Shown: positions 9,201 through 63,503, counted from the first letter of the stretch. The stretch: DNA of 64,000 nt from Macrostomum lignano (GCA_002269645.1 NIVC01002145.1:1-64000); one strand, 5' to 3'. Notes: a model not told the origin generated them from the sequence alone. A program made the numbers and translations.

Positions 9201-10195
9201 CTCACGTAAACAGAGAATCAGCCCTCACCTAAACAGAGAATCACCCTCATCCTAAAAAGAGAATCGCCCTCACGTAAACAGAGAATCGGCCCTCATCTAA
9301 ATAGACAATCGCCCCTCACCTAAAAAGAGAATCGCCCTCACCCACCAAGCCAATCGCCCAAACACCGCCACTTCCAACTCGCAGATTCCGCTGGTATCCG
9401 CAAGCTTTCTTTCAAAGCGTTGCCAGGGTAACTTGGACCATTCCGGCCGGCCAGCAACCGGGCGACTATCGGATCCGGCACCAAGGCCACTGCCGGCCAC
9501 TCATGTCCGGAATGCTGGCCGCCGATGTCCGGCCATTCAGTGGAGTGTCCGGCCGCTTTCGCGTGCTTCCAGACGGACTTTGGCAGCCTGGTAGGTTAAA
9601 AATATTGGGCTTGAGTGACCGGGCTTGTGTGTTGTCACCACTACCACCATCTGCTCAGTGTGCTGCCACCATCTGCTCAGTGTGTTGCCACCGTCTGCTC
9701 AGTGTGCTGCCACCGTCTGCTCAGTGTGCTGCCATCGTCTGCTCAGTGTGCTGCCACCATCTGCTCAGTGTGCTGCCATCGTCTGCTCAGTGTGCTGCCA
9801 CCGTCTGCTCAGTGTGCTGCCACCGTCTGCTCAGTGTGCTGTCTGAGCAATGCAAGATACAAAACCTGTCTACCTGGCGGGGGGGGGGTTCGTGATAAAG
9901 CAAATCAAATTTCACTTCCATTGGACGAAATCTGCTTAAATTAAACTGGCGTTCTACAATTTCGAAATTCAAGGCAGTTTCTGTTTCTCAATTCGTTTCA
10001 GGCAAATCCTTGATGGAGGAGCCTGGCTGGGCTCAGCGGGACTCAAATCTTCAGCTCAGCTTGAGCGTCAGTCCAGCAGCAGCAATGACCGCAGATGCAG
10101 CTTCAGCTCTCCGCTTCTGGCCGAGTCTGCTGCTGACAGGAACGAATTTCTGCTCCTGCATGCTGTTAAACTATTGCTTCAGCATTGGCTTATAG
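228..10195 (+). CDS. ASAH2: Neutral/alkaline non-lysosomal ceramidase (ASAH2/CDase family), 5' end outside window; carries indels
   Basis: Exons by GT-AG and phase: 228-368, 463-639, 1424-1551, 2230-2541, 3274-3363, 4819-5166, 5740-5877, 5987-6076, 6723-6983, 8463-8608, 9385-9590, 10002-10195. Family motifs: RLFSRAF, SATHTHAGPGG, INRHP, PVHGTS, SGDNKG, GDVTPN, CPAAFGYGFCGGTVDG, PAEMTTMSGRRL, GLSNGY..YVTT..EY, YEAGATLYGPNTL, CNPRN, WTIP..QQPGDYRIRH.G. One uncompensated -1 shift at 2431/2432 and a compensated +1/-1 pair at about 234/267. Confidence 0.93.
1610..2200. repeat. 52-53-bp minisatellite, ceramidase intron
   Basis: Unit about CCAGCCAATAAAAATGCAGGCCCATCCGACCATTACTCCAACCCCTGCCCCCT. Confidence 0.9.
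2588..3200. repeat. 21-bp minisatellite
   Basis: GCTAATGAATGAC(C/T)GAGACTA. Confidence 0.95.
3690..4135. repeat. About 20-bp minisatellite
   Basis: CCCCTTGAGATTTGTCCTCT and variants. Confidence 0.9.
5190..5645. repeat. About 34-bp C-rich minisatellite
   Basis: CCTTCTCTGCACCCCACCCCACGCCTTTTCCTAC and variants. Confidence 0.9.
6140..6680. repeat. 21-22-bp GATC/TTAGGG-containing minisatellite
   Basis: GGGATCATGGGATTAGAGATCG, then GGGATCCTAGGATTAGGGATC. Confidence 0.9.
7005..8430. repeat. 36-40-bp minisatellite
   Basis: ATGGTTAGTTCACTCTCACTCCGCCTGTC(TTT)CACACTC. Confidence 0.95.
8655..9340. repeat. 23-bp minisatellite
   Basis: ACCTAAATAGACAATCGGCCCTC. Confidence 0.95.
9630..9845. repeat. 22-bp minisatellite
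   Basis: CTGCTCAGTGTGCTGCCACCGT. Confidence 0.9.
10002..10195 (+). CDS. Candidate extra terminal exon of the ceramidase (Ser/Ala spacer plus hydrophobic tail)
   Basis: Phase-1 donor G|GTAGGT at 9590/9591 joins the TTTCAG acceptor ending 10001 in frame: GKSLMEEPGWAQRDSNLQLSLSVSPAAAMTADAASALRFWPSLLLTGTNFCSCMLLNYCFSIGL*. Confidence 0.6.
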
Positions 10196-10494: not shown

Positions 10495-11572
10495 CTAAAT
10501 ACTCGCCCCTCACCTAAACTGACTCGCCTCTCACCTAAATACTCGCCCCTCACCTAAATAGAGACTCGGCTCTCACCTAAATACTCTCCCCTCACCTAAA
10601 TAGAGACTCGCCTCTCACCTAAATAGAGACTGGCCCCTCACCTAAATTGACTCGCCTCTCACCTCAAAACTCGCCCCTCACTTAAATAGAGACTCGCCCC
10701 TCACCTAAATTGACTCGCCTCTCACCTCAAAACTCGCCCCTCACCTAAATAGAGACTCGCCCCTCACCTAAATAGAGACTCGGCTCTCACCTAAATAGAG
10801 ACTCGCCTCTCACCTAAATAAAGACTGGCCCCTCACTTAAATTGACTCGCCTCTCACCTCAATACTCGCCCCACACCTAAATACTCGCCTCTCACCTAAA
10901 TAAAGACTGGCCCCTCACCTAAATTGACTCGCCCCTCACCTAAATACTCGCCCCACACCTAAATACTCGCCTCTCACCTAAATACTCGCCCCACACCTAA
11001 ATACTCGCCTCTCACCTAAATACTCGCCCCTCACCTAAATACTCGCCTCTCACCTAAATACTCGCCCCTCACCTAAATACTCGCCCCTCACCTAAATAGA
11101 GACTCGCCTCTCACCTAAATAGAGACTCGCCCCTCACCTAAATAGAGACTCGCCCCTCACCTAAATACTCGCCCCTCACCTAAATAGAGACTCGCCCCTC
11201 ACCTAAATACTCGCCCCTCACCTAAATAGAGACTCGCCCCTCACCTAAATAGAGACTCGGCCCTCACCTAAATACTCGCCCCTCACCTAAATACTCGCCT
11301 CTCACCTAAATAGAGACTCGCCTCTCACCTAAATAGAGACTCGTCCCTCACCTAAATAGAGACTCACCCCTCACCTAAATAGAGACTCACCCCTCACCTA
11401 AATAGAGACTCGCCCCTCACCTAAATACTCGCCCCTCACCTAAATAGAGACTCGCCCCTCACCTAAATACTCGCCCCTCACCTAAATAGAGACTCGCCCC
11501 TCACCTAAATACTCGCCCCTCACCTAAATAGAGACTCGGCCCTCACCTAAATACTCGCCCCTCACCTAAATC
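10495..11572. repeat. 19/23-bp minisatellite related to 8655-9340
   Basis: ACCTAAAT(AGAG)ACTCGCCCCTC. Confidence 0.95.
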
Positions 11573-13794: not shown

Positions 13795-16700
13795 ATGAAG
13801 GCTGCCTTTGCATTTCTTTGTGGTAAGTGAGGGTTCACTTTTTTAAGTTAAAGTAAAGCTAAAACCGAAATTGAGTGGCTTAGCATCCGTGGACAAAATG
13901 TATTGATTGTTTGCTAGCCCTCTCGCCTAGTTTAGTACTTAGTAATAGTATGCAGAAGGCAGATAAAACTTGCCAATCAAAAGATCTGGAGCATGGTAAA
14001 TATGGCACATCCTGAAATACCAATTTTAGCTTTCTTATCTGAGCTGTCTTTACAAACTATTATTGATGAGCAAGCTGGAACAGTTTTAAAAGATGAATGG
14101 TCGCCCCCCTCCCCTATCAGGTCTTCAAATTTATCAGAATTAGAACATTAATCCTAATTGTATATGCTGATCAACTTGTCATTGTTTACCATTTAGTAAT
14201 GCCCTTTTAATAAAAGTGTTTGCTAGTTTTTTTTTACTTATTGTTATTATTCTACTTACAAAAAAGTCATGATTAGGGCCTACTATGTTAGTCGGTTTGT
14301 AATTTTGAATAAATCATGAATAATTAATTGTTAGATCATGACAACATAAAAAGGCTTAACTTTAAGATCTTAGTTTCTTCAAAACACTAGTACTATAATA
14401 ATAATAATAATAAAACCAATTATGAATAAATATAGGCCAAATGAATAGATAGATTCCAGTTATTTTCGTGAAAAGTCATTTTGGTAATAGATATTCCTGG
14501 GAACAATAGTCTAGACAAATAGTCATTTTGGTAACAAATTCTTTCTATGAAAGACACATTTCATTAGAAAAAAAATGAAAGATATGGTGAGTATATTTAT
14601 TTAGTGTATGGAGGCACTTCATAACATCATAGGCCTACAATTTATATTTTGTACATATTTGAAAAATTCCATCAAAAGATTAATATATTTAAGAAAAAAT
14701 CTAACTCAACTGATTATATTGCTTGTTTTTATGTATATTATTTTGATTTTTCCTAGAATATTTATAAACTATAAACATAGAAGACCTTTATCATAATATG
14801 TTGACCACAAAAATATAAGCATATATAAATGGAAGTGCTTAGGCCTATCCCCATGGTCCCATGCTGATAATTCCAATTTTATCCACATGGATCTATGTCG
14901 ATAATTTCCAACTTATCCCCATGGCAGCTTATTGGAATAAAAAACCTTAAAATGAATCTGTTCAAAAATTGTCTTTGTTTTCACTGTTTTACAATGTAAA
15001 AAAATATGTTTCACAATCTAATTAAACTATATGCATTGAATACTAAATAGTATTGAGTACTTTGTTTAAACTTTTTGTCATTAAAAGGGTTAATTTTAAA
15101 TATTTGCTTAGCTACTGGCTTTACTTATAACAACCAAATGACCCAAAGATCAAGGCAAATGAGACTTGCAAAATTTAACTTTCAATATATAATAATAATG
15201 ATAATATTACTAATAATAATGACAATCTTGATTTAATATCAGTACACAAAACTAAATACAAACAACTGCACAATCTTAGCTGTGGGGATAAGCTGAAAAT
15301 TATTGACACAGCCTATAGACTTGAATGATGGCAGCTATTTCAATAACTTCAATAAGCTGCCGTGGGGATAAGTTGAAAATTATTGACATGGATCTGTGTG
15401 GATAAAATTGGAATTATTGGCATGGGACCGTGAGGATAAGCACTTCCTATATAAATATTTACTACCTTTGGATAATGTACAAATTCAAAATATCACAACT
15501 TTTAAATAGTAAATAAACAAAATTAAATAAAACAATGCTTTACCCTTTTAAAAACAACTGAAATTTTAGGTTACATATGGTTTAGGATTGGCAAGATAAT
15601 TTTCTGCTTAAAACCAAAATGACTAGCACCAAAAAGGTCTTTTTTCTTGTCACCAAAATGACTAATAAGAAGTAGCTCTTTGGAATTATATTTTTCAATT
15701 TTTATGAAACCCAAAATTTGTAGTTGCTTGCATTTAATATGAAATAAATAATTTACAAGTAAATATTAATTACTTAAACATTTAGTTAAAATGAAACTTA
15801 AACAAATTGTTCCTTAAATAAGTTTTCTTTTATTATATTTACCAAATTCTTGACTTCTCAAGAATAATTTGATTAAACCAACCATCCCACAAACCCACCA
15901 GGTCTGGCTCTCGCCAGCTCCACTTTGGCTCTCTATGACTCATCTGATGATGTTATTGAGCTCACTACAGCCAACTTCAACTCTAAAGTGCTGAACAGTG
16001 ACGAGCTCTGGCTAGTTGAATTCTATGCACCCTGGTGCGGCCATTGTCAGAGCCTGGCACCAGCCTGGAAGCAGGCTGCCCGCGCGCTCAAAGGTGTAGT
16101 CAAAGTTGGCGCCATCAATATGGACGAGCACCAGTCTGTTGGCCAGCCCTATGGTATCCGCGGCTTCCCCACTATCAAGGTGTTCGGCAGCGACAAACAA
16201 TCGCCTAGCGACTACAATGGCGCCAGATCGGCCGATTCTATTGTTGACACGGCGCTTAGCCACCTACAGGCTATGGTTCGACAGCGACTTAGCGGTAAAT
16301 ATTCCGTTACTCCTTGCATTCTAATCGGGAGTGGGGGGGGGGGCATTTTTGTTAGTGCTTCATAGCTAGTAACACCGTGACTGTCACTGAGGCCTTATCC
16401 TCCCACAGGTGGCGGATCCTCTCGCGGCGGCAGCGGCGGAGGCGGCAGCGGCAGCGGCGCCGACGTTATTGAACTGACCGACGCCAATTTTGAAAGCACA
16501 GTAATGGGCAGCAAAGATCTGTGGCTAGTTGAATTCTTTGCGCCCTGGTGCGGCCATTGCAAACAGCTGAAGCCGCACTGGGACCGGGCAGCTAGCGAGC
16601 TGTCTGGGAAGGTGAGGTTTTGGAATACAAGAAATTATTGATTTATTTGGCCAAATCAAGCTGGTTCAAATCCCTAGCCTTGTATAATTGTATACTGTAT

Positions 16701-19700
16701 TATATCATATTACTAACAGTAGCATTGATTTAATTTTTCATTTGTAACACTTAGCTAGGAGGGAGACATTCCAGAGTTACCAAAAAATTTTTAGTGCAAA
16801 GGGTCGGCAAACTCCTGCCCTCGGGTCCTTTGAAACTTCACAATAGCAATCTGGCTCGCTTAAGATTTGTGTCTTCTCTCTCCCCCTCTCTGTCCTCTCT
16901 TCCCTCTTCTCGTCTCTTCCCTCTTCTCTGTTCTCTCCCCCCTCTTCTCTGTTATCTCTCCCCCCTCTTCTCTGTTATCTCTCCCCCCTCTCTGTCCTCT
17001 CTTCCCTCTTCTCGTCTCTCCCCTCTTCTCTCTTATCTCTCCCCTCTTTGTTCTCTCTGCCCTCTTCTCTGTTCTCACTCCCCTCTTCTCTCTTATCTCT
17101 CCCCTCTTCTCTGCTCTCTTCTCTCTTATCTCTCCCCTCTTCTCTGCTCTCTCCCCTCTTCTCTCTTATCTCTCCCCTCTTGTCTGTTCTCTCTTCTCTC
17201 TTATCTCTCCCCTCTTCTCTGTTCTCTCTTCCCTCTTCTCTGTTCTCTCTCCCCTCTTCTCTCTTATCTCTCCCCTCTTCTCTGTTCTCTCTCCTCTCTT
17301 CTCTCTTATCTCTCCCCTCTTCTCTGTTCTCTCTCCTCTCTTCTCTCTTATCTCTCCCCTCTTCTCTGTTCTCTCTCCTCTCTTCTCTCTTATCTCTCCC
17401 CTCTTCTCTGTTCTCTCTTCTCTCTTATCTCTCCCCTCTTCTCTGTTCTCTTTTCTCTCTTATCTCTCCCCTCTTCTCTGTTCTCTGTTCTCTCTTATCT
17501 CTCCCCTCTTCTCTGTTCTCTCTCCCCTCTTCTCTCTTATCTCTCCCCTCTTCTCTCTTATCTCTCCCCTCTTGTCTGTTCTCTCTTCCCTCTTCTCTGT
17601 TCTCTCTCCTCTCTTCTCTCTTATCTCTCCCCTCTTCTCTGTTCTCTGTTCTCTCTCCTCTCTTATCTCTCCCCTCTTGTCTGTTCTCTCTTCCCTCTTC
17701 TCTGTTCTCTCCCCTCTTCTCTCTTATCTCTCCCCTCTTCTCTGTTCTCTCTCCCCTCTTCTCTCTTATCTCTCCCCTCTTCTCTCTTATCTCTCCCCTC
17801 TTGTCTGTTCTCTCTTCCCTCTTCTCTGTTCTCTCTCCTCTCTTCTCTCTTATCTCTCCCCTCTTCTCTGTTCTCTGTTCTCTCTCCTCTCTTATCTCTC
17901 CCCTCTTGTCTGTTCTCTCTTCCCTCTTCTCTGTTCTCTCCCCTCTTCTCTCTTATCTCTCCCCTCTTCTCTGTTCTCTGTTCTCTCTCCTCTCTTATCT
18001 CTCCCCTCTTGTCTGTTCTCTCTTCCCTCTTCTCTGTTCTCTCCCCTCTTCTCTCTTATCTCTCCCCTCTTCTCTGTTCTCTCTCCTCTGTTCTCTCTTA
18101 TCTCTCCCCTCTTCTCTGTTCTCTCTCCTCTGTTCTCTCTTATCTCTCCCCTCTTCTCTGTTTTCTCTCCTCTGTTCTCTCTTATCTCTCCCCTCTTCTC
18201 TGTTTTCTCCCCCCTCTTCTCTGTTCTCTCTGCCCTCTTTTTTATTCTCATCTGGCCTGCAGCCACAAGCTGTATTCTTTTTCTGGCAGTTGAGGTAAAA
18301 GTTTGCCGACTCCTTGTGTGGCCAAACTCAGTTTACTAATGAGTGCGCCCCTTATTCACCTGTACAGGTGAAACTCGGCGCCCTGGACGCCACTGTGCAC
18401 ACATCGATGGCCGCCCGCTACGGTATCCAAGGCTATCCGACTATTAAAATGTTCCCGGCCGGCCGAAAAACTGGCGAAGCCGTCGAATACGACGGCGGCC
18501 GCACCTCGGACGATATTGTCCGGTGGGCTCTGGACAAACTGGCCGGTAAGTAATGCATCAAATTTAATCCAAGTTTGTACTAATTCACATGTACTTTTAA
18601 TAATAGGATAGGCCACTCAGGGATATTGGCACTCAGATGGCAAGGCTTGGGGGAATTGCTAAGATAGCAAGGCTTAGGGGGGATTGCTGAGATGTCAAGG
18701 CTTACGGGGGGATTGCTGAGATGGCAAGGCTTACGGGGGGATTGCTGAGATGTCAAGGTTTACGGGGAGAATTGCTGAGATGGCAAGGCTGAGGTCAGAA
18801 GCTACATGTAGTCTATTCAATTTTTTTTATTAAATTCTCTGTTGGCTCCCCAACAGGGGGCGCTGATTGCTAGTTTCTAGCTATGTTTAGTATCTGTCTG
18901 TACACTAATTAGATGACGACGCATCAAAAGCATTTTTTCTTAGAAGCAGGGAGCTGTGCGCATCCTCGCGCACTTTAAGCGACGTTGTCGCACAACCGGC
19001 GAGAGGCATTACTGCCCATTCCACCGGCCCCTCCTGAGCAAGGATACGTACGCAATCACAGGAGTGTAATCAATCACAGGAGTGTACAGCGGCCCTAACT
19101 TAATTTATCGTTAGGCATGTACACTTCACTGTGACTTGGGGGTTGGCCATCAAGGGCGTTAATTGCACGAGCAGAGCCAAGCCGAGATTCCAATTCAGCC
19201 CCAAATTAATGTGACTGCACTTGGAATCGAGCCTGGGCCGCTATCACATCTACTGGGCTACGGTCCCCTTCATCAAAAGCATGGCTAATCCTGCCTTTAA
19301 CTACTCGTCTGAAGCTAATCCATATTAATTCAATCGGTCTCCGCAGACTCCATCGCTCCGCCAGAAATTGTTGAAATAACTGACCAGACTGTGCTGCAGG
19401 ACCACTGCCTTGACAAGCAGCTGTGCGTTGTATCCGTGCTGCCTCAGCTGCTCGATTGCCAGTCCGACTGTCGCAACGGCTACCTGAAGATACTGAAAGA
19501 GATTGGCGAGAAGTACAAGAAATTAATGTGGGGCTGGGTCTGGTTCCAAGGCGGCGATATGCAGACGCAGGTAAAATACGGGCGATTGACGAACTACCCA
19601 CTTTCCACTTTTCATTTCTGTTGTTTCTTCTAATTTAAAATTTTCTGTTCTAATTTTTTCTTTTTTTTCGCATCCAGCTGGAGGAGGCTTTCGGTATCGG

Positions 19701-21453
19701 CGGTTTCGGCTACCCAGCCATGGCTGTTGTGAACGCCAAGAAGATGAAGTTCTCCCTGCTGAAAGGCCCATTCACCTTTGACGGTATTAACGAGTTCGTG
19801 CGCAGCCTGTCGCTCGGCCGCGGCTCCACCGAGCCGGTGCGCGGCGCCAGCATCCCGGAGGCTAAGAAGCGAGACCCGTGGGACGGCAAGGACGCCAAGG
19901 TGAGCGCTCATTTTTGGCTAGCTAGCTTCAGGGTTCTTCAGGAGCCTCTGCAAACCCTGCTAGCTCTCCCAATTCTTCAGGACCCACTGCAAACACCCAA
20001 TAGCCCCCGATTTTTTCAGGACCAACTGCGAACACCCCGATAGCCCCCGATTTTTCAGGACCCATTGCGAACACCCCGATAGCCCCCGATTTTTCAGGAC
20101 CCATTGCGAACACCCCGATAGCCCCCGATTTTTCAGGACCCACTGCGAACACCCCGATAGCCCCCGATTTTTCAGGACCCATTGCGAACACCCCGATAGC
20201 TCCCTATTTATCAGGACCCATTGCGAACACCCCGCTAGCCCCAGATTCTTCAGGACCCGCTGTGAACACCCCGATAGCTCCCTATTTATCAGGACCCATT
20301 GCGAGCACCCCGCTAGCCCCCGATTTTTCAGGACCCATTGCGAACACCCCGCTAGCCCCCGATTCTTCAGGACCCGCTGTGAACACCCCGATAGCCCCAG
20401 ATTTTCAGGACCCATTGCGAACACCCCGATAGCCCCCGATTTTCAGGACCCGCTGTGAACACCCCGATAGCCCCCGATTTTCAGGACCCATTGCGAACAC
20501 CCCGATAGCCCCCGATTTTCAGGACCCGCTGTGAACACCCCGATAGCCCCCGATTTTTCAGGACCCGCTGTGAACACCCCGATAGCCCCCGATTTTCAGG
20601 ACCCGCTGTGAACACCCCGATAGCCCCCGATTTTCAGGACCCGCTGTGAACACCCCGATAGCCCCCGATTTTTCAGGACCCACTGCGAACACCCCGATAG
20701 CCCCCGATTTTCAGGACCCGCTGTGAACACCCCGATAGCCCCCGATTTTCAGGACCCGCTGTGAACACCCCGATAGCCCCCGATTTTCAGGACCCGCTGT
20801 GAACACCCCGATAGCCCCCGATTTTCAGGACCCGCTGTGAACACCCCGATAGCCCCAGATTTTTCAGGACCCACTGCGAACACCCCGATAGCCCCCGATT
20901 TTCAGGACCGGCTGTGAACACCCCGATAGCCCCCGATTTTCAGGACCCGCTGTGAACACCCCGATAGCCCCCGATTTTTCAGGACCCACTGCGAACACCC
21001 CGATAGCCCCCGATTTTCAGGACCCGCTGTGAACACCCCGATAGCCCCCGATTTTCAGGACCCGCTGTGAACACCCCGATAGCCCCCGATTTTTCAGGAC
21101 CCACTGCGAACACCCCGATAGCTCCCTATTTATCAGGACCCATTGCGAACACCCCGCTAGCCCCCGATTCTTCAGGACCCGCTGCGAACACCCCGCTAGC
21201 TCTCCCGATTTTTCAGAACTCGCTGAAAACCCCTGCTAGGTCCTAATTCTTCAGGTGCCGCTGCAAACACCCCTAGCTCCCCTGACTCTTCAGCAAACCC
21301 CAACAACTTGTTAGTAACAAGAACCAATAATCGATAGCTCAATAATTATTGCTTCTCTCTGGGGTTCAGCTTCCCACAGTTGAGGATGACGGCATTGACG
21401 TGTCAGACATTGTGCTGGACACCATCGGCAAAGACAAGAAGCAGGAGCTTTGA
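13795..21453 (+). CDS. PDIA6: Protein disulfide-isomerase A6 (P5), a-a'-b domain order
   Basis: Exons 13795-13822, 15902-16294, 16409-16611, 18368-18545, 19347-19570, 19678-19899, 21370-21453. Signal peptide [19 protein letters not shown]; two WCGHC active sites; Gly-rich linker; b domain ([26 protein letters not shown]); acidic tail ending KQEL*. Confidence 0.96.
14831..15447. mobile_element. Non-autonomous Mutator-like (MULE) MITE in PDIA6 intron 1
   Basis: Imperfect terminal inverted repeats of about 105 bp starting GGAAGTGCTT (14831 to about 14940 vs about 15345-15447); exact 9-bp flanking direct repeat TATATAAAT at 14822-14830 and 15448-15456; no internal ORF. A 9-bp TSD with long G-initiated TIRs is the established MULE signature. 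Confidence 0.8.
16870..18240. repeat. Polypyrimidine (TC-rich) compound satellite, PDIA6 intron 3
   Basis: Built from CCCCTCTTCTCT, TTATCTCT and GTTCTCT blocks. Confidence 0.95.
18635..18790. repeat. Short ~33-bp tandem repeat
   Basis: GATGGCAAGGCTTACGGGGGGATTGCTGA and variants, about 5 copies. Confidence 0.8.
19925..21260. repeat. 38-39-bp minisatellite, PDIA6 intron 6
   Basis: GAACACCCCGATAGCCCCCGATTTTCAGGACCCGCTGT. Confidence 0.95.
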
Positions 21454-24851: not shown

Positions 24852-39914
<15,063 letters not shown>

Positions 39915-47749: not shown

Positions 47750-48785
47750 CCTAACCCTAAACCTAACCCTAAACCTAACGCTAAACCTAAACCTAAATCT
47801 TAACCTTAACCTAAACCTAACCCTAACCCAACCCTAACCCTAACCCAACCCTAACCCTAACCCTAACCCTAAACCTAAACTAAACCTAAAACTAAACCTA
47901 GCCCTAAACCTAACCCTAAACCTAAACCAAAATCTAAACTAAACCTAAAACTAAACCTAACCCTAAACTAAACCTAAACTAAACCTAAACCTAACCCTAA
48001 CCCTAAACCTAAACCTAAACCTAACTCTAAACATAACCCTAAACATAACAATAAACCTAAACCAAAACTTCACCCTAAACCAAAACCTAACCCTAAACCT
48101 AAACCAAAATCTAAACTAAACCTAAAACTGAACCTAACCCTAACCTAAACCTAAACTAAACCTAAACCTAACCCTAACCCTAACCCTAAACCTAACCCTA
48201 ACCCAAAGCCTAAACCAAAACCTAAACCTAAACCTTACCCTAAACCTAACCCTAAACCTAACCCTAAACCTAACCCTAAACCTAAACCTAAATCTAAACT
48301 AAACCTAAAACTGAACCTAACCCTAACCTAAACCTAACCCTAACCCAACCCTAACCCTAATCCTAACCCTAAATCTAAACTAAACCTAAAACTAAACCTA
48401 ACCCTAACCTAAACCTAAACTAAACCTAACCCTAACCCTAACCCTAAATCTAAACTAAACCTAAAACTAAACCTAACCCTAACCTAAACCTAAACTAAAC
48501 CTAAACCTAACCCTAACCCTAAACCTAAATCTAAACCTAACTCTAAACATAACAATAAACCTAAACCAAAACTTCACCCTAAACCAAAACCTAACCCTAA
48601 ACCTAAACCTAAATCTAAACTAAACCTAAAACTAAACCTAACCCTAACCTAAACCTAAACTAAACCTAAACCTAACCCTAACCCTAACCCTAAACCTAAC
48701 CCTAACCCAAAGCCTAAACCAAAACCTAAACCTAAACCTTACCCTAAACCTAACCCTAAACATAAACCGAAAACTAAATCTAACT
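47750..48785. repeat. Degenerate telomere-like array (CCCTAA/CCTAAA)n
   Basis: Mixed CCTAAC, CCCTAA and CCTAAA hexamers. Confidence 0.9.
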
Positions 48786-49870: not shown

Positions 49871-50324
49871 GAGTTTCTACAAGACCGGAATGAACAGCAC
49901 AGCAGTCATCAAGTGGAAAGCAGATGATATTCATTTTAGCCAAGGGCTGACGAGAGCAACATCCCAGATGATAAGCCACTCGGATAGGCTTTTATTCTCT
50001 TGGAACGAATTGCACGGGGCGAATGGGGCAAATTTGGCGAGCCGGCGAGGATCGGGGGGCTGATGGGGGGGGGGGTAGAAAAATCCCCATCAAGGAGGCA
50101 GTGTATATAAGGCATTATTCCCGCTGAAAGCCGGCTATTTGTCAGGCTTGCCCAGAGATTTCCTGGATCGATTTTTGGGAAAACACGCGCATTCTGACAG
50201 GCCCTACGCCTTCCATTGTAACTGGGGGTAAGCGGCCGCTGATTTTGATCGAGTCTGACTGCCGACTTGCACCGGCTGTTTGTTGCACTGACTCGGGCAT
50301 TGAAACTTTGCCCGTCTTCTTTAG

Positions 50325-51915: not shown

Positions 51916-52397
51916 AGTTCAGGTCCTGGTCCTGATCCCAATTTCGAACCCAACCCCTGTTCTTGATCCTGATCCCAACCCTATGGAGAATTAATTCTTT
52001 TGCAAGAATGCGACAGTGAAGAACTGCAAAGGCTGAAAGGCAGTCTTCGCGACAATATAAAGTGCCTTCTGTGTTAACTGGGGTAGGACTAAGAACACTG
52101 TTTCCATCGGACTTGGATATTCATGTTCGATAGAAAATGAAAGTGCATGGAATTTACAAGTTAACGAGATTACCAATTATTCATAGCTGGGACCAAATCT
52201 GCAATGTGCGATAATGAATTTTCTTAAGTAAACAGGACTTCTTCATCAGCTGCTCGCTCACCTCGATGCCTTCTCTTCTAGATTATTAATTCTCCGCGCT
52301 TTCATTTTCTTCAACCTTTACTGAAAGTAGTGTGTTTGTAATGATAGTTTCCTCCACCGACTTACATCCTTACCCTGCGCGCAGCCTGCCAGTTACC

Positions 52398-55300
52398 ATG
52401 GTAACAAGCGACAGCGCCGCGAAAAACGACGCCGACAACAGTCGAAAGGCGGACGCGGAAGCAAAGCGGCGCGCCCGTGGCGCCGAGGCCGCCACAGCAA
52501 TGGCGATGACGTCGGTGACCCCCGCGGAGACGTCGGCGACCCCGGCGGCTAAGTCGCATCGAGACACCGCTACTTCCAGTCGTCGGAGTAGACGGGGCGA
52601 GTCCAAGCACCGACGCAAGGATCAGAGAAATCAGCAGCAACATCATCATCAGCAGCAGCAGCACAGCTTCCTAGCTGCAGCGGTGGCGGCCACCGCCGCG
52701 GCCACAGTCGGGCTGCACTTGCTAGAAACGAAAGCGCCGATCGCGCACGACGATGAAGAAGACGAGGAGGCTGCGGCAGCGGCGGCAGCGGCTACGGGCT
52801 CAGACGCCGCCGCCCTGCTGGTTGCCGCTGCTGCAGGCGGCGGCGGTCCGACGCAAAACGGCGTCTCTGATGGGTGTAGAAGCGGCGTGAATACTCTGGC
52901 GAATCCGAGTGCAGCTGAAGGTGACAGAACTCACTTTTGCGTAGCTATGGGAGGCTCACCATTGTTACTCCATAGACTGGATTCCAGCGACTGTGCCAGC
53001 TCATCCCCAGTCTCTCTCCCTGTCCCCATTCTCTCCCCCAGCCCTCACGGAGCCGACCATAGACTATGGATTCCAGCGACTGTGCCAGCTCATCCCCAGT
53101 CTCTCTCCCTGTCCCCATTCTCTCCCCCAGCCCTCACGGAGCCGACCATAGACTATGGATTCCAGCGACTGTGCCAGCTCATCCCCAGTCTCTCTCCCTG
53201 TCCCCATTCTCTCCCCCAGCCCTCACGGAGCCGACCATAGACTATGGATTCCAGCGACTGTGCCAGCTCATCCCCAGTCTCTCTCCCTGTCCCCATTCTC
53301 TCCCCCAGCCCTCACGGAGCCGACCATAGACTATGGATTCCAGCGACTGTGCCAGCTCATCCCCAGTCTCTCTCCCTGTCCCCATTCTCTCCCCCAGCCC
53401 TCACGGAGCCGACCATAGACTATGGATTCCAGCGACTGTGCCAGCTCATCCCCAGTCTCTCTCCCTGTCCCCATTCTCTCCCCCAGCCCTCACGGAGCCG
53501 ACCATAGACTATGGATTCCAGCGACTGTGCCAGCTCATCCCCAGTCTCTCTCCCTGTCCCCATTCTCTCCCCCAGCCCTCACGGAGCCGACCATAGACTA
53601 TGGATTCCAGCGACTGTGCCAGCTCATCCCCAGTCTCTCTCCCTGTCCCCATTCTCTCCCCCAGCCCTCACGGAGCCGACCATAGACTATGGATTCCAGC
53701 GACTGTGCCAGCTCATCCCCAGTCTCTCTCCCTGTCCCCATTCTCTCCCCCAGCCCTCACGGAGCCGACCATAGACTATGGATTCCAGCGACTGTGCCAG
53801 CTCATCCCCAGTCTCTCTCCCTGTCCCCATTCTCTCCCCCAGCCCTCACGGAGCCGACCATAGACTATGGATTCCAGCGACTGTGCCAGCTCATCCCCAG
53901 TCTCTCTCCCTGTCCCCATTCTCTCCCCCAGCCCTCACGGAGCCGACCATAGACTATGGATTCCAGCGACTGTGCCAGCTCATCCCCAGTCTCTCTCCCT
54001 GTCCCCATTCTCTCCCCCAGCCCTCACGGAGCCGACCATAGACTATGGATTCCAGCGACTGTGCCAGCTCATCCCCAGTCTCTCTCCCTGTCCCCATTCT
54101 CTCCCCCAGCCCTCACGGAGCCGACCATAGACTATGGATTCCAGCGACTGTGCCAGCTCATCCCCAGTCTCTCTCCCTGTCCCCATTCTCTCCCCCAGCC
54201 CTCACGGAGCCGACCATAGACTATGGATTCCAGCGACTGTGCCAGCTCATCCCCAGTCTCTCTCCCTGTCCCCATTCTCTCCCCCAGCCCTCACGGAGCC
54301 GACCATAGACAATAGATTTATACATAGAAGTAGCTGAATTCTTAAGCTACTTTAAGTAGCTCAAAAGCAACTTTGAAAATGTGCCCCAACTTTTATTTTA
54401 GTTTTAATTGGCTCTCTGAAGTATATGCGCAGAACAGAACTATCTGCGGGTACAAAAGTGAACACTAGAGTCACCGTGACACTTAGGTTTGATTGGCACA
54501 GCTGATCGCTCAATGGAGACCCTCAAGTTTTCATCAGCAAATGTCGTCGGTTTGTAGCAATTAAAAATTTTAACCGTTTATTTGGCCGCCAAAGGTGGTA
54601 AAGAGGAATTAATAAACAAATATGATAAACTATAAACTAAAATGGATTTTTTTCATCTTCAAACTGCGTTTGTGCATGACGCCAATGGAATAAGCTGATT
54701 TTCAACTACGCTATTCCAAACGGATCTAGAATCTGCTTTAGGGATGGCAGTTTCCACTCCAGAGATATTCTACTAGTTATAGATCTCCATGGACAGCATT
54801 TGATGATAGGTAATGTTAAATCATGGATATATCTTCAGACCCAAGCCCTAGAACTCCAGGCTCCGACCTACCTACACCGCTGCTGCCACTCTGCTTGGGC
54901 TCACAGCACTGTTTCTGGATGCGGAGAGCAGAAATGCGGAAGTTTTGCCCCCTACTAACAATTTTAACTGCTTTGCCTGTCTTGTCTGCTTCAGTGCTTC
55001 AGTAAAGCAGATTCGCCAAAAGTTGTTAACTTTTGCGGCATCCCATCCGACAGTCCATCCCGGGGTCGCGCTAAGATATTATCCCCTTAGCTGGGCCAAG
55101 AAGACCGAAAAACTAGAATTTGGAGTGGCAACTCTTCTTTCCAGGCCAGTTCTTTGACACTAAATGAAACTGGTATCCCTTTATCCCAAGGGATCGGGAT
55201 CGGGATCGGGATCGGGATCGGGATCGGGATCGGGATCGGGATCGGGATCGGGATCGGGATCGGGATCGGGATCGGGATCGGGATCGGGATCGGGATCGGG

Positions 55301-58300
55301 ATCGGGATCGGGATCGGGATCGGGATCGGGATCGGGATCGGGATCGGGATCAGGATCGGGATCGGGATCGGGATCGGGATCGGGATCGGGATCGAGACCG
55401 GGATTCGACAGAAGATCTGGGAGAAAAGTTTCTACTCCAAATTCTGGTTCTGGGTGTCCTTGGCTGGGGCCGTCCCTCAAGTAGACCACACGGGTTGCCC
55501 GCCAATAAACCAGCGATCATGCAGTCCCGCTTCGCTTCATATATTAGCCATCCCCGTTATCCTCTACATGAATGCACTTTTCCTTTGTCTCTGCACACCG
55601 ACCGTGCAGAGCCAGTCGGGGCCGCGTTGAAGGGCATCGAGGACGACAACCTGACAGGCGGCCTGCTCACCGAACGCGAGTGCCAGGCTCTGGTCCTGAG
55701 AAATCTGCATTACCGGCCTCGCCCATTCAGCGCCTTCACAACCTACAGCGACGCGATGCAGAGCGAAGACGACATCGAGGAGCTGCGAGCGACGGCCGGC
55801 CAGCGAACGTCCAACTACGACAATTTGCCTGCATCAGCCGCTGCTGCAGCCGCTGCTGCTGCGGGTTCGCCGCCGGAACTGCCGGTGCGAACGAGGCGTC
55901 AGGATGCGCAGACGAAGCTGCTGCTGGCGCCACTGGCCGCCGGCGGCGGGGTGACGTCTGTGGCTGCGGCGGAGACTGAAGATGACAGTGAGAGTCAGAT
56001 TGACAGGGAGTTGAAGGGAGGGATGAAGGATGTGAAGATAAATCGAGATTCAAGAAGAGATTCGTAAATGGATTCGTGAATGGATTCGTGAATGGATTCG
56101 TGAATGGATTCGTGAATGGATTCGTGAATGGATTCGTGAATGGATTCGTGAATGGATTCGTGAATGGATTCGTGAATGGATTCGTGAATGGATTCGTGAA
56201 TGGATTCGTGAATGGATTCGTGAATGGATTCGTGAATGGATTCGTGAATGGATTCGTGAATGGATTCGTGAATGGATTCGTGAATGGATTCGTGAATGGA
56301 TTCGTGAATGGATTCGTGAATGGATTCGTGAATGGATTCGTGAATGGATTCGTGAATGGATTCGTGAATGGATTCGTAAATGGATTCGTGAATGGATTCG
56401 TGAATGGATTCGTGAATGGATTCGTGAATGGATTCGTGAATGGATTCGTGAATGGATTCGTGAATGGATTCGTGAATGGATTCGTGAATGGATTCGTGAA
56501 TGGATTCGGAAAAAGGAAAGAAAAAGATGTGACCCTTCAGTCCAGCTTAAACCCTGCCGCCGCTCGCAGAGGCGGCAGACACCGATGGCAAGAAGGCCGC
56601 CGCCGACCAGGCGACAGACTCGCCCGAGAAGCAGAAAAATCAGCAGCAGCAGCAGCAGAACGACGGCAAGCCGCCCACTCGGCCGAAGGTGTCGAAGTGG
56701 AAGCGACGAAGGCGTCGCTGCGTCTCCTGCCTGAAGACCTCCGTGGCCTTCCTGTTCTCGCACATCGGCCTGTGCCTGCTGGTGATTGGCTACACCCTGT
56801 CAGGGGCTTACCTGTTCGTCTACCTGGAGCACGATCGGTCGGTCATGGACAATCGGATGTACACGGAGAGCGTGGCTCAGACGAGAATTCATATGAGGTT
56901 TGAGACTGGGACTGGGAAGGAAGCTGCTGAGAGCTTGCCCTAAGAAAATATTGATAATCTGAGCCACTAGATTATTTAAGAATAGATCTAAAAATTGAGA
57001 CAAGAGAGACTGGATCTATAGACTAGAATAGGAAGACTATGCGAGACTAGATCTGGGAAACTCGATATACGAGACTAGATCAGAAAGACTAGATCTAAAG
57101 ACTAAGAGCTGAGAGTCTAAATCTGAGAGAATAGATCTTAGACTAAATAAGGGAGACTAAATCTGTGAGACTTGATAATAAAGACTAAATCTACGAGACT
57201 TGATATGAAAGACTAGATCTGAGAGACTACATCTGAGAGACTAGATCTGAGAGGCTAGATTTGAGAGACTAGATCTGAGAGACTAGATCTGAGAGACTAG
57301 ATCTGAGAGACTAGATCTAAAAGACTAGATCTAAGAGACTAGATCTGAGAGACTAGATCTGAGAGACTAGATCTGAGAGACTAGATCTGAGAGACTAGAT
57401 CTGAGAGACTAGATCTGAGAGACTAGATCTAAAAGACTAGATCTAAAAGACTAGAACTCAGACTCTACACAATCAAACCTGTCTATCGATAGAAGCTTAC
57501 AAAAATCAAGAACTTCGAAAGTTGAACACGCACTCTATTCAGGCCTTCCATACCATCAGTTGCAAGATCCCTGCTTCTCAGGAATGTATTCTTTCCTCCT
57601 AGCCAGCCATGCGGGGTGAACCTCAGATTAATAATTAACTGAGTTACCCCAGCAGCTGTTGCGGCAGAGAACGGGGATGGAGTAGAGGTGCCGGAAAAAC
57701 AAACTAAAATTAGATTCGCACTCAAGCAGATTTTCCACAAACAAAGGAAGAGAGGAGAGTCTCAGTGAACATGAATAATTCACTGATGCGGCGCTTAGTA
57801 TTGCACTTGAGCTCTTGCACTTGAGCTCGTAGGATCAGCAGTGGGAGGTCTTGGTAATGCGCGCTCAAGACCTCATTGCTAATTCACTGTAATTGCAGTG
57901 CACTAACTGAACTCGACCAATTAGAGAAATTCTTGCTTTTAATTGAGGTAGGAAATCATGTTAATGTTTTTCTGGGCCAAATTTATGGATGTTACTCATC
58001 TAGCTTGTAGATTACTCATCTATAGCTTGTAGATTACTCATATATAGCTTGTAGATTACTCATCTATAGCTCGTAGATTACTCATACTCGTATATAGCTT
58101 GTATATTACTTATCTAGTCTGTAGATTACTCATCTAGTTTGTAGATTACTCATATAGTCTGTAGATTACTCATCTAGCTTGTAGATTACTCATCTAGCTT
58201 GTAAATTACTCATCTAGCTTGTAGATTACTCATCTAGCTTGTAGATTACTCATCTAGCTTGTAGATTACTCATCTAGCTTGTAGATTACTCATCTAGCTT

Positions 58301-61300
58301 GTAGATTACTCATCTAGCTTGTAGATTACTCATCTAGCTTGTAGATTACTCATCTAGCTACAACTGCTAAACCCCACAGCGGCAACATGACCCAACCAGT
58401 CGTCGAGATGATCCAGGAGCTCAAGTCGGACTTTGAGCAGTTGTTTCACGTTCTAGAAGACATGGCAGACGAGTCCTACAAGAAGCTGCTCAACATCAGC
58501 CAGATGCTGAGTTCGAGTCGGCTCCGACTGGCCGACGCCGTGCGCGAAGTTGGCGACGCAAATTCGCAGCTGTTGCACCAGCTTCAGGGGGACTTCACCC
58601 AGCATGAGGACAGCATCGAGACGCAGGTGGGGGTCCTCGGCAGCCTCCTGTCCAACATCAGCTGTCCGCCGTGCCCGTTTGGGCATCCGGGTGGCAACCG
58701 GTCTGGCAGCACCGGTCGCAGCATGCAGGACTACACTAACATGGTGCACAGGATCCGACAGCAGCTGGACAAGTAAGCCGGTCCGCGAAAACTGACCCTA
58801 ACCTAAATCCTATCCGTAACCTTATCCTAAACTCTAACCGAAACCCTAACCTTAATCCTAACCTAAACCCTAACTTACACCTAACCTAAACCCTATAACC
58901 TAAACCCTAACCTAAACCCTAACCTTAACCATAACTTTAGCCCTTAGCCCTAACCTAAATCGTAGACAGAAGCGGATAAGCATCGTAAAAGCAATAAAAT
59001 CGATTAAAAAATCGATAGAAAAAATCTATATTAACAGATCAATATTAAAATATCGATCATGAAAAATTTATTATTAATAGAAAATTACTATATATGTATG
59101 TAACAGACAACTGAAAATCCGAAAATGCTTCATCTTCAGCAATCAAATTTTCTATAAAAAATTCAGATCTCAGCTCGGCATCCGCAAGGAGCTTCGGCAG
59201 GCTGTCAACTCGGCCAAGGCTCGCATCCGAGAGGAGGTGTTCCAGCTGTTCAATCATTCAACCGCCTACCGGCGCCAGGTGCTGCAGGTGCAGGCCTCTT
59301 TAGAATTGATGCAGGCCAGCCTCTACAATTTCACCAGCGTTGCCCACCTCGAGTTGGAGAACAATCGAGTTCTGCTAGAGAAAATCAAAGGCGGTAAAGA
59401 TTATTCCACTGTTGGCACCAATACTATGATGGCCAGGTACAATTATTCGGCCACTTTGCGTACCTGGGCGCTGAAACTGGAGGAGTCTGTTTACAGCTAC
59501 GCCATGCGGGGCTGGAGTCGGCCAGACGAGGACAAGCCGGGGGTCAATCAGACTATCTGGACTTTTCCTGGCGCTCTGCTGTACGCCATCACCATAGTGA
59601 CTACCATTGGTGAGCGGCGCTTGTGACTATTGCTGATGTACTGATTTTCCACTTGTATCCATACATGCTTCTGACTCTGTGATCTCATCTCTCCACACTC
59701 CTGACACTGCGATCTAGTCTCTCTACTTATCTCGCTCTGCGATCTAGTCTCTCCACTCTTCTGACTCTGTGTTCTAGTCTCTCTACTCATCTCGCTCTGT
59801 GATCTAGTCTCTCTACTCATCTCGCTCTGCGATCTAGTCTCTCCACTCTTCTTACTCCGTGATCTAATCTCTCAACTATTCTGACTCGGTGATCTAGTCT
59901 CTCCACTCTTCTGGCTCCGTGATTTAGTCTTTCCACTCTCCTGACTCTGTGATCTAGTCTTTCCACTCTCCTGGCTCCGTGATCTAGTCTCTCCACTCTC
60001 CTGGCTCCGTGATCTAGTCTCTCCTCTTCTTATTTCCCCCTCTCTCTTCTAGTCCTGCTTTGCGAATTGGCGGTGGGAAGTTTATAATAAGAGCGCATAG
60101 TGTACTTTTGCTGTGAGACGATGTCGTTCATCCTGGGAGTTCTGGCTGTCCCCCCTCCGAAGTTGTGCATCCAATTCGCAGGACGTCTAACTTGGCTAAT
60201 CGGTTTTCTGTGTTAATCAGAGCGATCATTAAATTTTTATGGGTTGCCAGGGCACTGATGTCTCAACTGATCTTTCTGGCATATCTATGCGTCTGTGAGT
60301 TTATGTATCCATGCAATCCATGCATCTATACTTCTAGGTATATGCATCTATCTAGGGGTGAGCGTCGGACTCACGACTGAAAGGTCGGGGGTTCGATTCT
60401 CGAGCCACCTCGGAACAATTTGTGTCCTTGAGCAAGACATTAGCTGGGGTAATTGAGGGTGTGTGTGGCGACCCCCCCCCTCCCCAGTCCTTGGAGTGAA
60501 CAGGCGTACGCAGCCTTCAGATGCGTTGCGCATCTATACATCTATATCAATCTATATATCCATGCATCTATAAATCTATGCATCTATATTATTGCCTAGG
60601 AAGTGTCATCACGAGCTGAAATGCGTGTAGAATACGAGCCCATACCCTATATCATGACCCTGCACACGGCAGAGTGGACTTCAATTACAATCTGCAATAA
60701 TTGCCTGCAAGCAATTGGGGAAATCCCATTTTTGAATTCGCATCGGTTAACCAGCTGAGTAAGCCCCAAAAAAATTGGTCCCAGTGTAATCTGTATGCTT
60801 TCAATTAAAGATTTCTGAAGCGAAACTGCAGATGATTGTGCACAGACTTAGCCAAGCAAATGGTATCGATCAGTGCAGTTACCTCGCTCAGTTGCCTGCA
60901 GTGCGCAGCCAGATTGGTCAGCCATGCCTTCACACTGATGACCTCTTCGGGAGGCGGATCACCGTTCTTTTATGATCATCATTTTTCTCTTTCTCTGTGT
61001 CTGTCTCTTCCATATCTCCTCTGGTTTGAAAGTCTTCCCAATTGCGAGATTAAACTGTCGAGGGCTATTGAACCTAAAAATCATAAAAATGCATGGCACA
61101 ACTCGACTCCTTGGTTTCATGAATCGATTTTATCATCTGTTACACATACGCTCGTACTGTTACACAGTCAGCTAAGAATGACAAAATAGATTCATAAAAC
61201 CAATGAGCTGAGCCATGCAATTTTAATGGTTTTCAGGCACAGGGCATGTACAAATGTACGTAGAATAAATCATTAAGCTTTATGAATATCAATAGAGCTA

Positions 61301-63503
61301 TAACAAAGGCACAACATATCAAAAGATGAACATTGGGTCTGCCTCCTGCTGAAAAAAGATTTTCTTGGAAAAATTTTTTTTCCAAGAAACGAGATTTCCC
61401 GTCCTTGTACTTGAGCAGTCTTTGCTGAGAATTTTATTTCTAAGAAATTCACTACAATGCCCCCCTCCGTTTTTCTACTATTGGATTTTGGACTGCTGTT
61501 ATCGTTCAGTCCTGGCCTCAGTCGTAGATTTTCAAGCTAAATTGGCCAATTCCAAGAAAACAGGTCCGACAGTCGAGACGGATTCGATCTTAATTAAGAG
61601 GAAAGCCAACATTCTGGCTAGCTGTGCAACTGTCGGTAAAACCCAAGTTGCGCGGGGCCGCATCCCAGCGGGATTGGGGGGGGCATGGACAAACCAGAGC
61701 TGTGCGTTCTGCAGTTTGCCGTTGTCCTTCAAATCTCGTCCCGATGCAAAACCAGCATGCAGTACCCGTGTTCTGCGCTAGTTTTGGCCTCTCATGGTTC
61801 GCTCACGGTTGAATGGTCAGAGAGAGAAGGGGCCACGAATTTCAAACTGTTTCTAAGAAAAGGAAACAGGTCGAGTTGGTTATTGGAGGATTCAAGGGCA
61901 CTCAGTTCAATGACACTGAGGGAGCGGAGAGGTAGATTCAAGGACACTGAGGGAAGGGAGAGGCAGATTCAAGGACACTGAGGGAGCGGAGAGGTAGATT
62001 CAAGGACACTGAGGGAGCGGAGAGGCAGATTCAAGGACACTGAGGGAGCGGAGAGGCAGATTCAAGGACACTGAGGGAGCGGAGAGGCGGATTCAAGGAC
62101 ACTGAGGGAGCGGAGAGGTAGATTCAAGGACACTGAGGGAGCGGAGAGGCAGATTCAAGGACACTGAGGGAGCGGAGAGGCAGATTCAAGGACACTGAGG
62201 GAGCGGAGAGGTAGATTCAAGGACACTGAGGGAGCGGAGAGGCAGATTCAAGGACACTGAGGGAGCGGAGAGGCGGATTCAAGGACACTGAGGGAGCGGA
62301 GAGGTAGATTCAAGGACACTGAGGGAGCGGAGAGGCAGATTCAAGGACACTGAGGGAGCGGAGAGGCGGATTCAAGGACACTGAGGGAGCGGAGAGGTAG
62401 ATTCAAGGACACTGAGGGAGCGGAGAGGCAGATTCAAGGACACTGAAGGAACAGAATGGCAGATTTCTTACTATTTACGGACTACTTACGGACGCATTCA
62501 AACACAAAGGGCTATTGCTACTACAAGTAGTGCAAATTTTAATTAATAGTATAAAATTGGTCCCAAACTGGCTGCCATCGCAGGCTACGGCCACGTGGCG
62601 CCCAAAACGGTTGCCGGCCGGCTGTGCACCATCTTCTACGCCATGGTGGGCATCCCGCTGATGCTGCTATGCCTGCACAACCTCGGCTCCTTCCTGGCTG
62701 ACGTGTTTCGCCTCTGCTACCAGCACTGCTGCCTCCGTCTGTGGCGCAGACGTCGGATGCGCCGGCTGGCCCGCCATCACGAGGCCATCAGCAGTCGCAG
62801 TCGGCGGGGCCGGGTGCGCGCCTTTGACCAGCTGTCGGAGATCATGCCCATCTCCAGCCGCTACCGGTCCCGACGGAGCAACCGTAGCGGCGCTACAGTC
62901 CGGCGCGGCGGCGGCGGCGGCAGCGGACGGAGCGGTCTATCGACGGCTACGACGGCCGGCGGGCGACACGGGGCGGCGGAGGCGACGCTGGGCGGCAACG
63001 GTGGATCGCCGCCAGCGATGATGTCGCGTCGACGAATCTTCCAGCTGGCCGACCCGAGCACCGGGCAGACGCTGGACCTGTGCGTGCTACCGCCGGCGTC
63101 GGTGGGAACCGCCGGGCGGGCCGCCAGCTCCTACGCCGCCTCGACGCCAGTCAGCAGCGTCGAGGATCTCGGCGAAGTAATCCGCGTGCCGGTCTGGCTG
63201 ACCCTGACGGTGTTCTGCATCTACATCCTGACCGGGGCGGTGCTGTTCTACTCCTGGGAGCAGTGGGGCTTCATGGACTCCGTCTATTTCGTGTTCATCA
63301 CCCTGACAACCATCGGGCTGGGCGACTTCGTGCCCGGCATGCAAGAGTCGTCCTGGACTGACGAGGCCAAGCCAATCACCTGCGGCCTGTACCTGCTGTT
63401 CGGCCTGGCCATGATCGCCATGTGCTTCCAGCTGATGCAGGAGGAGGCCAAGGACAAGGTGAAATCGTTCGGCAGAAAGATCGGACTGCTGGACGATGGC
63501 TGA
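52398..63503 (+). CDS. Two-pore-domain potassium channel (K2P/TWK family) with very long M1-P1 loop
   Basis: Exons 52398-52920 and 55610-55987 (assigned by phase compatibility only), 56570-56897, 58380-58772, 59167-59609, 62584-63503. M1 [25 protein letters not shown]; P1 [18 protein letters not shown]|YGHVAPKT; M2 [18 protein letters not shown]; M3 [21 protein letters not shown]; P2 [17 protein letters not shown]; M4 [19 protein letters not shown]. An acceptor ending 52384 suggests a further upstream exon, possibly UTR. Confidence 0.92.
52970..54310 (+). repeat. 89-bp COE-exon-derived array (about 15 apparently identical copies) in K2P intron 1
   Basis: Unit = TCTCTCTCCCTGTCCCCATTCTCTCCCCCAG|CCCTCACGGAGCCGACCATAGACTATGGATTCCAGCGACTGTGCCAGCTCATCCCCAG; identical 87-aa ORFs recur every 89 bp in the ORF track. 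Confidence 0.98.
55190..55395. repeat. (GGGATC)n
   Basis: About 34 units. Confidence 0.97.
56060..56508. repeat. (GTGAATGGATTC)n 12-bp repeat
   Basis: About 37 units. Confidence 0.97.
57000..57460. repeat. 14-bp minisatellite
   Basis: GAGACTAGATCTGA. Confidence 0.9.
58000..58360. repeat. 20-bp minisatellite
   Basis: GTAGATTACTCATCTAGCTT. Confidence 0.92.
58790..58960. repeat. Degenerate telomere-like tract in K2P intron 4
   Basis: CCTAAC/CCCTAA hexamers. Confidence 0.8.
59670..60025. repeat. 30-bp minisatellite
   Basis: GATCTAGTCTCTCCACTCTTCTGACTCTGT and variants. Confidence 0.9.
60355..60530 (+). mobile_element. tRNA-derived SINE fragment in K2P intron 5
   Basis: tRNA-like head with B box GGTTCGATTC (60390-60399), then GTGTCCTTGAGCAAGACA (60422-60439), which resembles the conserved central domain of V/Meta-type SINEs; no acceptor stem. 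Confidence 0.6.
61900..62450. repeat. 31-bp minisatellite (about 17 copies)
   Basis: ATTCAAGGACACTGAGGGAGCGGAGAGG(C/T)AG. Confidence 0.95.

Follow-up and report, generated by a model that had tools for sequence, protein, structure and literature searches.

An 89-bp minisatellite from a COE intron/exon boundary and its apparent copy in an intron of the neighbouring K2P channel gene of Macrostomum lignano

In the flatworm Macrostomum lignano, the COE gene and the two-pore-domain K+ (K2P) channel gene downstream of it each carry a tandem array of the same 89-bp unit, and that unit spans the boundary between a COE intron and the exon that encodes the start of the COE helix-loop-helix (HLH) domain. 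Both arrays lie in one 64-kb window, NIVC01002145.1:1-64000 of assembly Mlig_3_7, which is the whole stretch of DNA analysed here. Comparison of the arrays supports a history in which a piece at the COE boundary was amplified at COE, giving array A, and the amplified form was copied 14 kb into the K2P gene, giving array B. Taken as a whole, the locus is probably a minisatellite whose history can be traced, neutral or at worst mildly harmful and produced by ordinary repeat turnover. The argument depends on the following features, in which decoys are the copied acceptors and 'mirage' is the name used for comparable arrays in amphioxus.

38205-38331, + strand: COE exon encoding the end of the TIG domain (...APGRFVYT), with a phase 1 donor (GT at 38332), from translation and Pfam.
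38479-38849, + strand: array A, the source 'mirage' array with 4 decoy units, from Tandem Repeats Finder and the in-register cut.
38850-39113, + strand: authentic COE HLH exon, matching COE1_HLH at 103.6 bits over profile positions 1-44 of 44.
52385-52920, + strand: K2P channel exon (annotated exon 2), with its ATG at 52398 and a phase 1 donor (GCT GAA G/gt).
52921-55609, + strand: K2P intron 2 (2689 nt), host of array B, which makes up 49.9% of it.
52970-54310, + strand: array B, 15 units of 89 bp, from Tandem Repeats Finder and the in-register cut.
54303-54318, + strand: right junction of array B, CCATAGACAATAGATT against the unit's CCATAGACTATGGATT, with 14 of 16 positions matching.
55610-55987, + strand: next K2P exon with its authentic acceptor, whose pyrimidine tract scores 12/20 against the decoys' 18/20.

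Tandem arrays were called by Tandem Repeats Finder, and their units were then cut in register. Splicing was inferred from GenBank gene models together with the sequence; the GenBank annotation of M. lignano was built from RNA-seq and transcriptome assemblies (PMC5730564).

The 89-nt unit has three parts: the 15 nt with which the COE intron ends (CATTCTCTCCCCCAG); a match to the start of the HLH exon, 52 nt long with a single C-for-A mismatch (K to Q), or 56 nt long with a 1-nt gap; and a 19-nt pyrimidine-rich linker, CAGTCTCTCTCCCTGTCCC, found at 38549-38567 and in every unit of both arrays. Units in both arrays follow one another head to tail as CATTCTCTCCCCCAG / CCCTCACGG...GCTCATCC plus the linker, and each spans the intron/exon boundary. 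The 18-aa peptide encoded by a single unit matches Pfam COE1_HLH positions 1-25 at 34.5 bits, above the gathering score of 27. An earlier reading of the window made from its sequence only (hereafter the sequence-only reading) had recognized this combination of COE acceptor end and exon start; it set the exon match at 58 nt, longer than the 52-56 nt found here, and assigned the remainder to the present-day COE intron. That remainder includes the linker, which differs from the exon continuation, is absent upstream of the first unit of array A and has no template in the window outside the two arrays. It would be either filler inserted where the first duplication was joined or a piece of the ancestral intron that the present one has lost.

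Array A stands in a COE gene that spans about 25100-39910 of the window. The HLH exon and the exons preceding it are 80-86% identical to COE/EBF transcription factors, and the joined exons hold complete Pfam TIG and COE1_HLH domains. Tandem Repeats Finder placed the upstream array at 38479-38901 (period 89, 4.8 copies, 97% matches). Its units measure 89, 89, 88 and 90 nt and occupy 72% of the 518-nt COE intron; a fifth, starting at 38834, just continues as the real exon, so that array A abuts the authentic exon. Because the exon part of the unit is deeply conserved coding sequence and array A is continuous with a functional exon, we take array A to be the birthplace of the repeat.

Array B begins 49 bp past the K2P donor (52920/52921), in line with the roughly 50 bp first estimated, and was called at 52970-54318 (period 89, 15.2 copies, 99% matches). 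Cut in register, it consists of 15 whole units at 52970-54302 followed by a terminal CCATAGAC that leads into the flank, the same motif with which the array opens at 52970. The earlier description of about 15 identical units was accurate in number (exactly 15) and for units 2-15, which are 100% identical; unit 1 lacks 2 bp (GACTGG for GACTATGG). Both arrays are on the + strand and lie about 14.1 kb apart, the distance and orientation already proposed. For a 40-mer taken from the unit, shuffled sequence predicts 0.00 occurrences; the window has 18, and none of them lies outside arrays A and B. The window thus holds only two arrays of this unit, of 0.37 and 1.34 kb, and on that count the earlier label 'satellite' seems overstated.

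The direction of the move can be read from the units themselves. The exon-to-linker-to-intron junction is a feature of the amplified form alone; array B has it and therefore derives from array A, as expected if a COE exon fragment was amplified and then moved. The array B unit also mixes variants of different array A copies, as the sequence-only reading had remarked: CTGTGC traces to source copies 4-5, CCAGCTC to copies 1-3 and CATCCCCAG to copy 2. A blastn comparison of the flanks of the two arrays returned only chance-level matches of 16 nt or less, and since the flanks share nothing beyond chance, only the repeat units appear to have moved. A larger segmental transfer was rejected on the same absence of significant flank similarity and on the absence of extra unit copies in the window. 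Array B is a derivative of a mirage that has no attachment to an authentic exon and sits in a foreign intron between unrelated flanks.

The host gene assembles as a two-pore-domain K+ channel with two Ion_trans_2 domains, and its closest database relatives are three M. lignano GenBank proteins, BOX15_Mlig031602g1, g2 and g3. The g3 locus (L002) is identical to the window at offset 40132 and is the window's own K2P copy. Its seven exons in the window (50133-50227, 52385-52920, 55610-55987, 56570-56897, 58380-58773, 59168-59609 and 62584-63503), once spliced, give GenBank PAA60491.1 residue for residue; two of the exon boundaries could shift by one base without altering the translation. The exon just upstream of array B, first taken for the channel's first exon, is annotated exon 2.

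We compared three copies of the K2P locus: the window and two loci on NIVC01001401.1, L001 (142939-175510) and L003 (93729-124940, reversed). Array B lies in the same K2P intron in all three, with 15 units in the window, 7 in L001 and 4 in L003. The left junction is common to the three loci (...gttact/CCATAGACT--GGATT, including the 2-bp deletion in unit 1), as is the right junction (CCATAGAC(a/t)ata(g/t)atttatacataga). The units of L001 and L003 differ among themselves: variants include CTATGCC, CCGTGCC, CCGCAG, TGCCCCC and CAGCTCTCACGG, and the pyrimidine tract shows small deletions. Unique flanks of the window are 93-98% identical to those of L001 and L003 (about 2-3% substitutions plus indels), and those of L001 and L003 are about 98.6% identical to each other. 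Because the junctions and the unit-1 deletion are identical across the three loci, the comparison indicates one insertion older than the divergence of the locus copies. The arrays then grew and shrank independently, and that of the window was recently homogenised as it expanded. The resulting spread of 15, 7 and 4 units is the copy-number instability that would be expected of a neutral minisatellite. Redundancy of the duplicated DV1 genome has been described (PMC5730564), and the three copies may represent homeologues or haplotypes within it. On NIVC01001401.1 the K2P copies L001 and L003 stand head-to-head, are about 1.4% diverged and have starts roughly 38 kb apart; the symmetry centre of the pair should lie inside the COE gene. 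This arrangement would be either a real inverted duplication or a chimeric haplotype join in the assembly.

The junctions also bear on how the units moved. The insert amounts to a whole number of units, 15 x 89 - 2 + 8 nt in the window and 7 x 89 - 2 + 8 nt in L001, the last 8 nt being the CCATAGAC repeated at its far end. At this junction the right flank resembles the unit (8 nt exact or 14/16 positions in the window; 11 consecutive bases in L003), a match that is either a terminal, decayed partial unit or microhomology used in the insertion. Microhomology-primed copying from array A and a single crossover with a circular multimer would predict these junctions equally well, and both microhomology repair and circular DNA have been proposed for the spread of satellites in Drosophila (PMC7403614). 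We favour local templated repair because the arrays lie close together in cis and share their orientation. Transport as extrachromosomal circles (89-bp multimers, possibly of rolling-circle origin) that re-integrated at the CCATAGAC microhomology is a possible but rather doubtful alternative. The exact whole-unit insert, its permuted phase and the same 8-16-nt motif at both ends are what a single circle crossover gives, and tandem repeats are known to give rise to circles and to spreading satellites (PMC7403614); however, microhomology-templated repair predicts identical junctions, and the shared strand and 14-kb proximity in cis favour a local template. The two routes first suggested, circles or gene conversion, are therefore both viable given the whole-unit insert and the 8-16-nt flank match, with preference for a local template.

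For a minisatellite copied from COE, the history runs as follows. An 89-bp COE segment was first tandemly duplicated immediately upstream of the real exon, creating a boundary minisatellite of the mirage type. A break in the K2P intron, 14 kb further downstream, would then have received copies of one or a few array A units in unchanged orientation, with the array meeting the flank at the microhomology CCATAGAC(N)AT(N)GATT. The direction of this step is better established than its mechanism, which would be synthesis-dependent or template-switching repair templated by array A, or re-integration of a circular multimer. This single event preceded the divergence of the three assembled locus copies, and independent expansion and contraction led to 15, 7 and 4 units, the 15-unit array of the window having recently been homogenised from one variant. 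Finally, the spliceosome presumably ignores most of the 15 copied acceptors, which have no downstream donor or exon context, and normal K2P mRNA results; any occasional use of a decoy would yield a premature-stop transcript destined for degradation.

The 15 decoy acceptors of array B follow the series 53042+89n up to 54288, and the first decoy exon start at 53042 agrees with the original proposal. The K2P and COE donors are both phase 1. Donor 52920 joined to any of the first 14 decoys gives an in-frame chimera that stops after 36 codons, exactly the peptide first predicted, and joined to the 15th it gives a shorter 16-aa tail. GenBank models of all three K2P copies nonetheless join ...NPSAAE/EPVGAAL..., skipping 15, 7 or 4 units; in PAA60491.1, the splice from 52920 to 55610 crosses the whole of array B. 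Within the unit, GT occurs only as GTGCCA, GTCTCT and GTCCCC, none of them like GTRAGT. With an acceptor and no GTRAG-type donor, the unit therefore cannot define an internal exon. By the usual definition of a poison exon, what is present is the acceptor; a downstream donor is absent, and the nearest AATAAA/ATTAAA motifs lie 250-300 nt beyond the array. A word-indexed search of a 5.8-billion-sequence collection did not find the array translation in predicted proteins, returning weak COE helix-1 matches only. An exhaustive profile search of 1.84 billion representatives gave four hits, all weak and limited to the COE helix-1 segment. An Rfam scan of the window gave no hits. A functional gene trap, a poison-exon array or a useful chimeric peptide, as the sequence-only reading had envisaged, is thus not supported: annotated mRNA skips the array, the unit has no donor, predicted proteins do not contain the product and copy number is unstable. 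Decoys may still be used at a low level, with the resulting transcripts degraded.

A stronger version holds that array B is a working cluster of decoy or poison acceptors, with a substantial share of K2P pre-mRNA spliced from 52920 to the 15 acceptors and stopped prematurely, and with channel expression lowered in proportion to copy number. We consider this unlikely. The junction is in frame and stops after 36 codons, the decoys have pyrimidine tracts of 18/20 against 12/20 at the authentic acceptor and lie upstream of it, and the array is retained in 3/3 locus copies. However, the transcriptome-derived annotated mRNAs of all three copies skip the array, and the unit has no donor site. Copy number drifts over 4, 7 and 15 while units gain substitutions and small pyrimidine-tract deletions, the analogous pseudo-sites of mirages and of the human F7 gene are silent, and the window is saturated with unrelated minisatellites. 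A more general idea seems to us a shade less probable still: boundary minisatellites would act as mobile splice-acceptor cassettes, copied into other introns as copy-number-tunable decoy or poison sites and occasionally grafting a sub-exon peptide (here COE helix 1) onto the host protein. If true, it would provide a repeat-driven, transposon-independent route to gene trapping and exon-fragment shuffling.

Several observations weigh against a neutral minisatellite that was copied once. The decoys are locally stronger than any authentic K2P acceptor: the linker brings every copy, the authentic COE acceptor at 38850 included, to 18/20 pyrimidines before CAG, against only 10-13/20 at authentic K2P acceptors, and a plausible branch-site-like CTCAT motif lies 38 nt upstream of each copy's acceptor. 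Because the decoys are both stronger and transcribed before the real acceptor, their complete silence is not guaranteed. Retention of array B in 3/3 locus copies fits neutrality without proving it. The first step in array A was not a plain duplication of present-day contiguous sequence, because the linker has no template. Variants CTATGCC/CTGTGCC and CCGCAG/CCCCAG are common to arrays A and B, which may reflect the transfer of several units or continuing exchange between the arrays.

Two further explanations are very improbable. In the first, the array, or its position or size, would have been created by the assembly, a highly repetitive one built from long reads: consensus polishing could account in part for fourteen perfectly identical units, and the other contig has a suspicious head-to-head locus duplication, but the array stands at identical junctions in three separately assembled loci with differing copy numbers and unit variants. 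Misassembly, named at the outset as the outcome that would undo the finding, was rejected on these shared junctions, with the exact count of 15 still dependent on the assembly. In the second, the 89-mer would be carried by a transposable element, or would belong to a genome-wide satellite family that contains COE-like sequence by chance, with CCATAGAC at both ends readable as an 8-bp target-site duplication; yet CCATAGAC belongs to the unit itself and occurs in array A too, terminal inverted repeats are lacking, the flanks of the two sites are not homologous, further copies are absent from the window, and the exon part is genuine conserved COE coding sequence adjoining a real exon. A transposable-element-borne repeat was accordingly rejected, as no shared element sequence was found at the flanks and CCATAGAC is unit sequence.

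Array A brings decoys of its own, with acceptor-like CAG sites at 38494, 38583, 38672 and 38760. Decoys 2 and 4 keep the reading frame open, adding 89 and 30 aa and duplicating helix 1; translation from decoys 1 and 3 meets stop codons. Selection as the reason for the two in-frame decoys was considered and dropped, the chance being 1/3 per decoy and their frame so no evidence. Searches found no GenBank M. lignano protein with a COE HLH domain and no COE transcript model. The only M. lignano COE entry, UniProt A0A1I8IWB3, is a prediction from an older assembly that jumps from ...RFVYT to the last exon (39816-) and omits the HLH exon. What derailed the gene's annotation may have been array A itself or a filter by which the annotators discarded transcripts that overlap repeats. 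Boundary arrays of this kind can mislead gene predictors; the COE gene is absent from the GenBank annotation and mis-spliced in the older prediction.

Tandem repeats are abundant around both genes. The window has 31 minisatellite arrays of period 12 or more that cover about 35% of it, nearly every intron and intergenic stretch having one; simple and tandem repeats make up 15% of the M. lignano genome (PMC5730564). Local dispersal of repeat families seems common in the window. Two other pairs of related arrays were seen, one on the same strand (8656-9342 and 10495-11571) and one on opposite strands in two different K2P introns (57043-57455 and 59668-60024). Interstitial telomere-like arrays of CCTAAA (about 175 copies) and ACCCTAACCTAA lie at 47750-48783 and 58795-58955, with syntenic counterparts of different length in L001. 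The upstream neighbours are a neutral ceramidase-like gene (460-9600) and a protein disulfide isomerase A6-like gene with two WCGHC thioredoxin motifs (15877-20040), both with introns full of minisatellites. In L001-L003, K2P is followed downstream by a minus-strand ceramide-kinase-like gene (DAGK_cat, CERK_C).

The locus offers a rare tandem-repeat 'jump' in which source, direction and order (COE, then the K2P intron) are unambiguous because the unit is an unmistakable piece of a conserved coding exon, and its later turnover is calibrated by three diverged locus copies. It also places 15 exact copies of a strong 3' splice site in an intron that is still correctly spliced according to annotation, and four more before the COE acceptor, a natural experiment in how flatworm spliceosomes distinguish real acceptors from perfect decoys. 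Its value is that of a clean tracer of tandem-repeat mobility and a splice-decoy experiment rather than of a new biological system.

Array B resembles a poison exon or gene trap in having a strong acceptor (CTCAT, 18/20 pyrimidines, CAG) followed by an in-frame stop for the phase 1 K2P donor, and differs in that its unit has neither a donor nor a dedicated poly(A) signal, its copy number is unstable and no transcript model includes it. A closer parallel is the 37-bp variable-number tandem repeat (VNTR) of intron 7 of human F7, whose first unit spans the exon 7 donor, whose pseudo-donors are silent and which has served as a model of splice-site choice (PMC1557585). In both cases a minisatellite multiplies an authentic splice site into identical pseudo-sites; those of F7 are functional in principle and normally silent, as the decoys would largely be here. 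In F7 the multiplied site is a 5' splice site and its copies lie downstream of the real one; in M. lignano it is a 3' splice site, multiplied upstream of the real one in array A and in a foreign intron in array B.

The nearest relatives of array A are the amphioxus 'mirage' minisatellites of Adh3, troponin C, the globins BflGb6 and BflGb9, and PGBD5, which have unstable length and duplicated AG/GT signals and produce no aberrant mRNAs (PMC3087553, PMC3902484). Array A shares their design, an intron 3' end and the 5' part of an exon repeated head to tail with the last unit continuing into the authentic exon. Its 89-bp unit falls within the 10-160 bp reported in amphioxus, copy number varies among haplotypes or locus copies (here seen for array B), and splice signals are duplicated; regular mRNA would still be made in M. 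lignano, going by the K2P gene models, which skip array B. The flatworm belongs to another phylum, so the mirage phenomenon is extended to Platyhelminthes; its 19-nt linker is not present-day contiguous sequence, and its unit was copied out into another gene's intron, detached from any exon. Export of a mirage unit to the intron of another gene is not described in PMC3087553, PMC3902484 or PMC1557585, and this is apparently the first boundary minisatellite of the kind to be noted in a flatworm.

For the move itself, the comparison is with Rsp-like satellites, which spread into 1.688 clusters in Drosophila simulans and D. mauritiana through microhomology repair, interlocus conversion or circular DNA (PMC7403614). 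Both systems show a tandem repeat at a new locus, short junction microhomology, local expansion by unequal exchange and no transposon features. The Drosophila repeats reached many loci and used a pre-existing satellite as landing pad, whereas M. lignano shows one 14-kb jump into a unique intron, and here the genic origin of the unit fixes the direction of the move.

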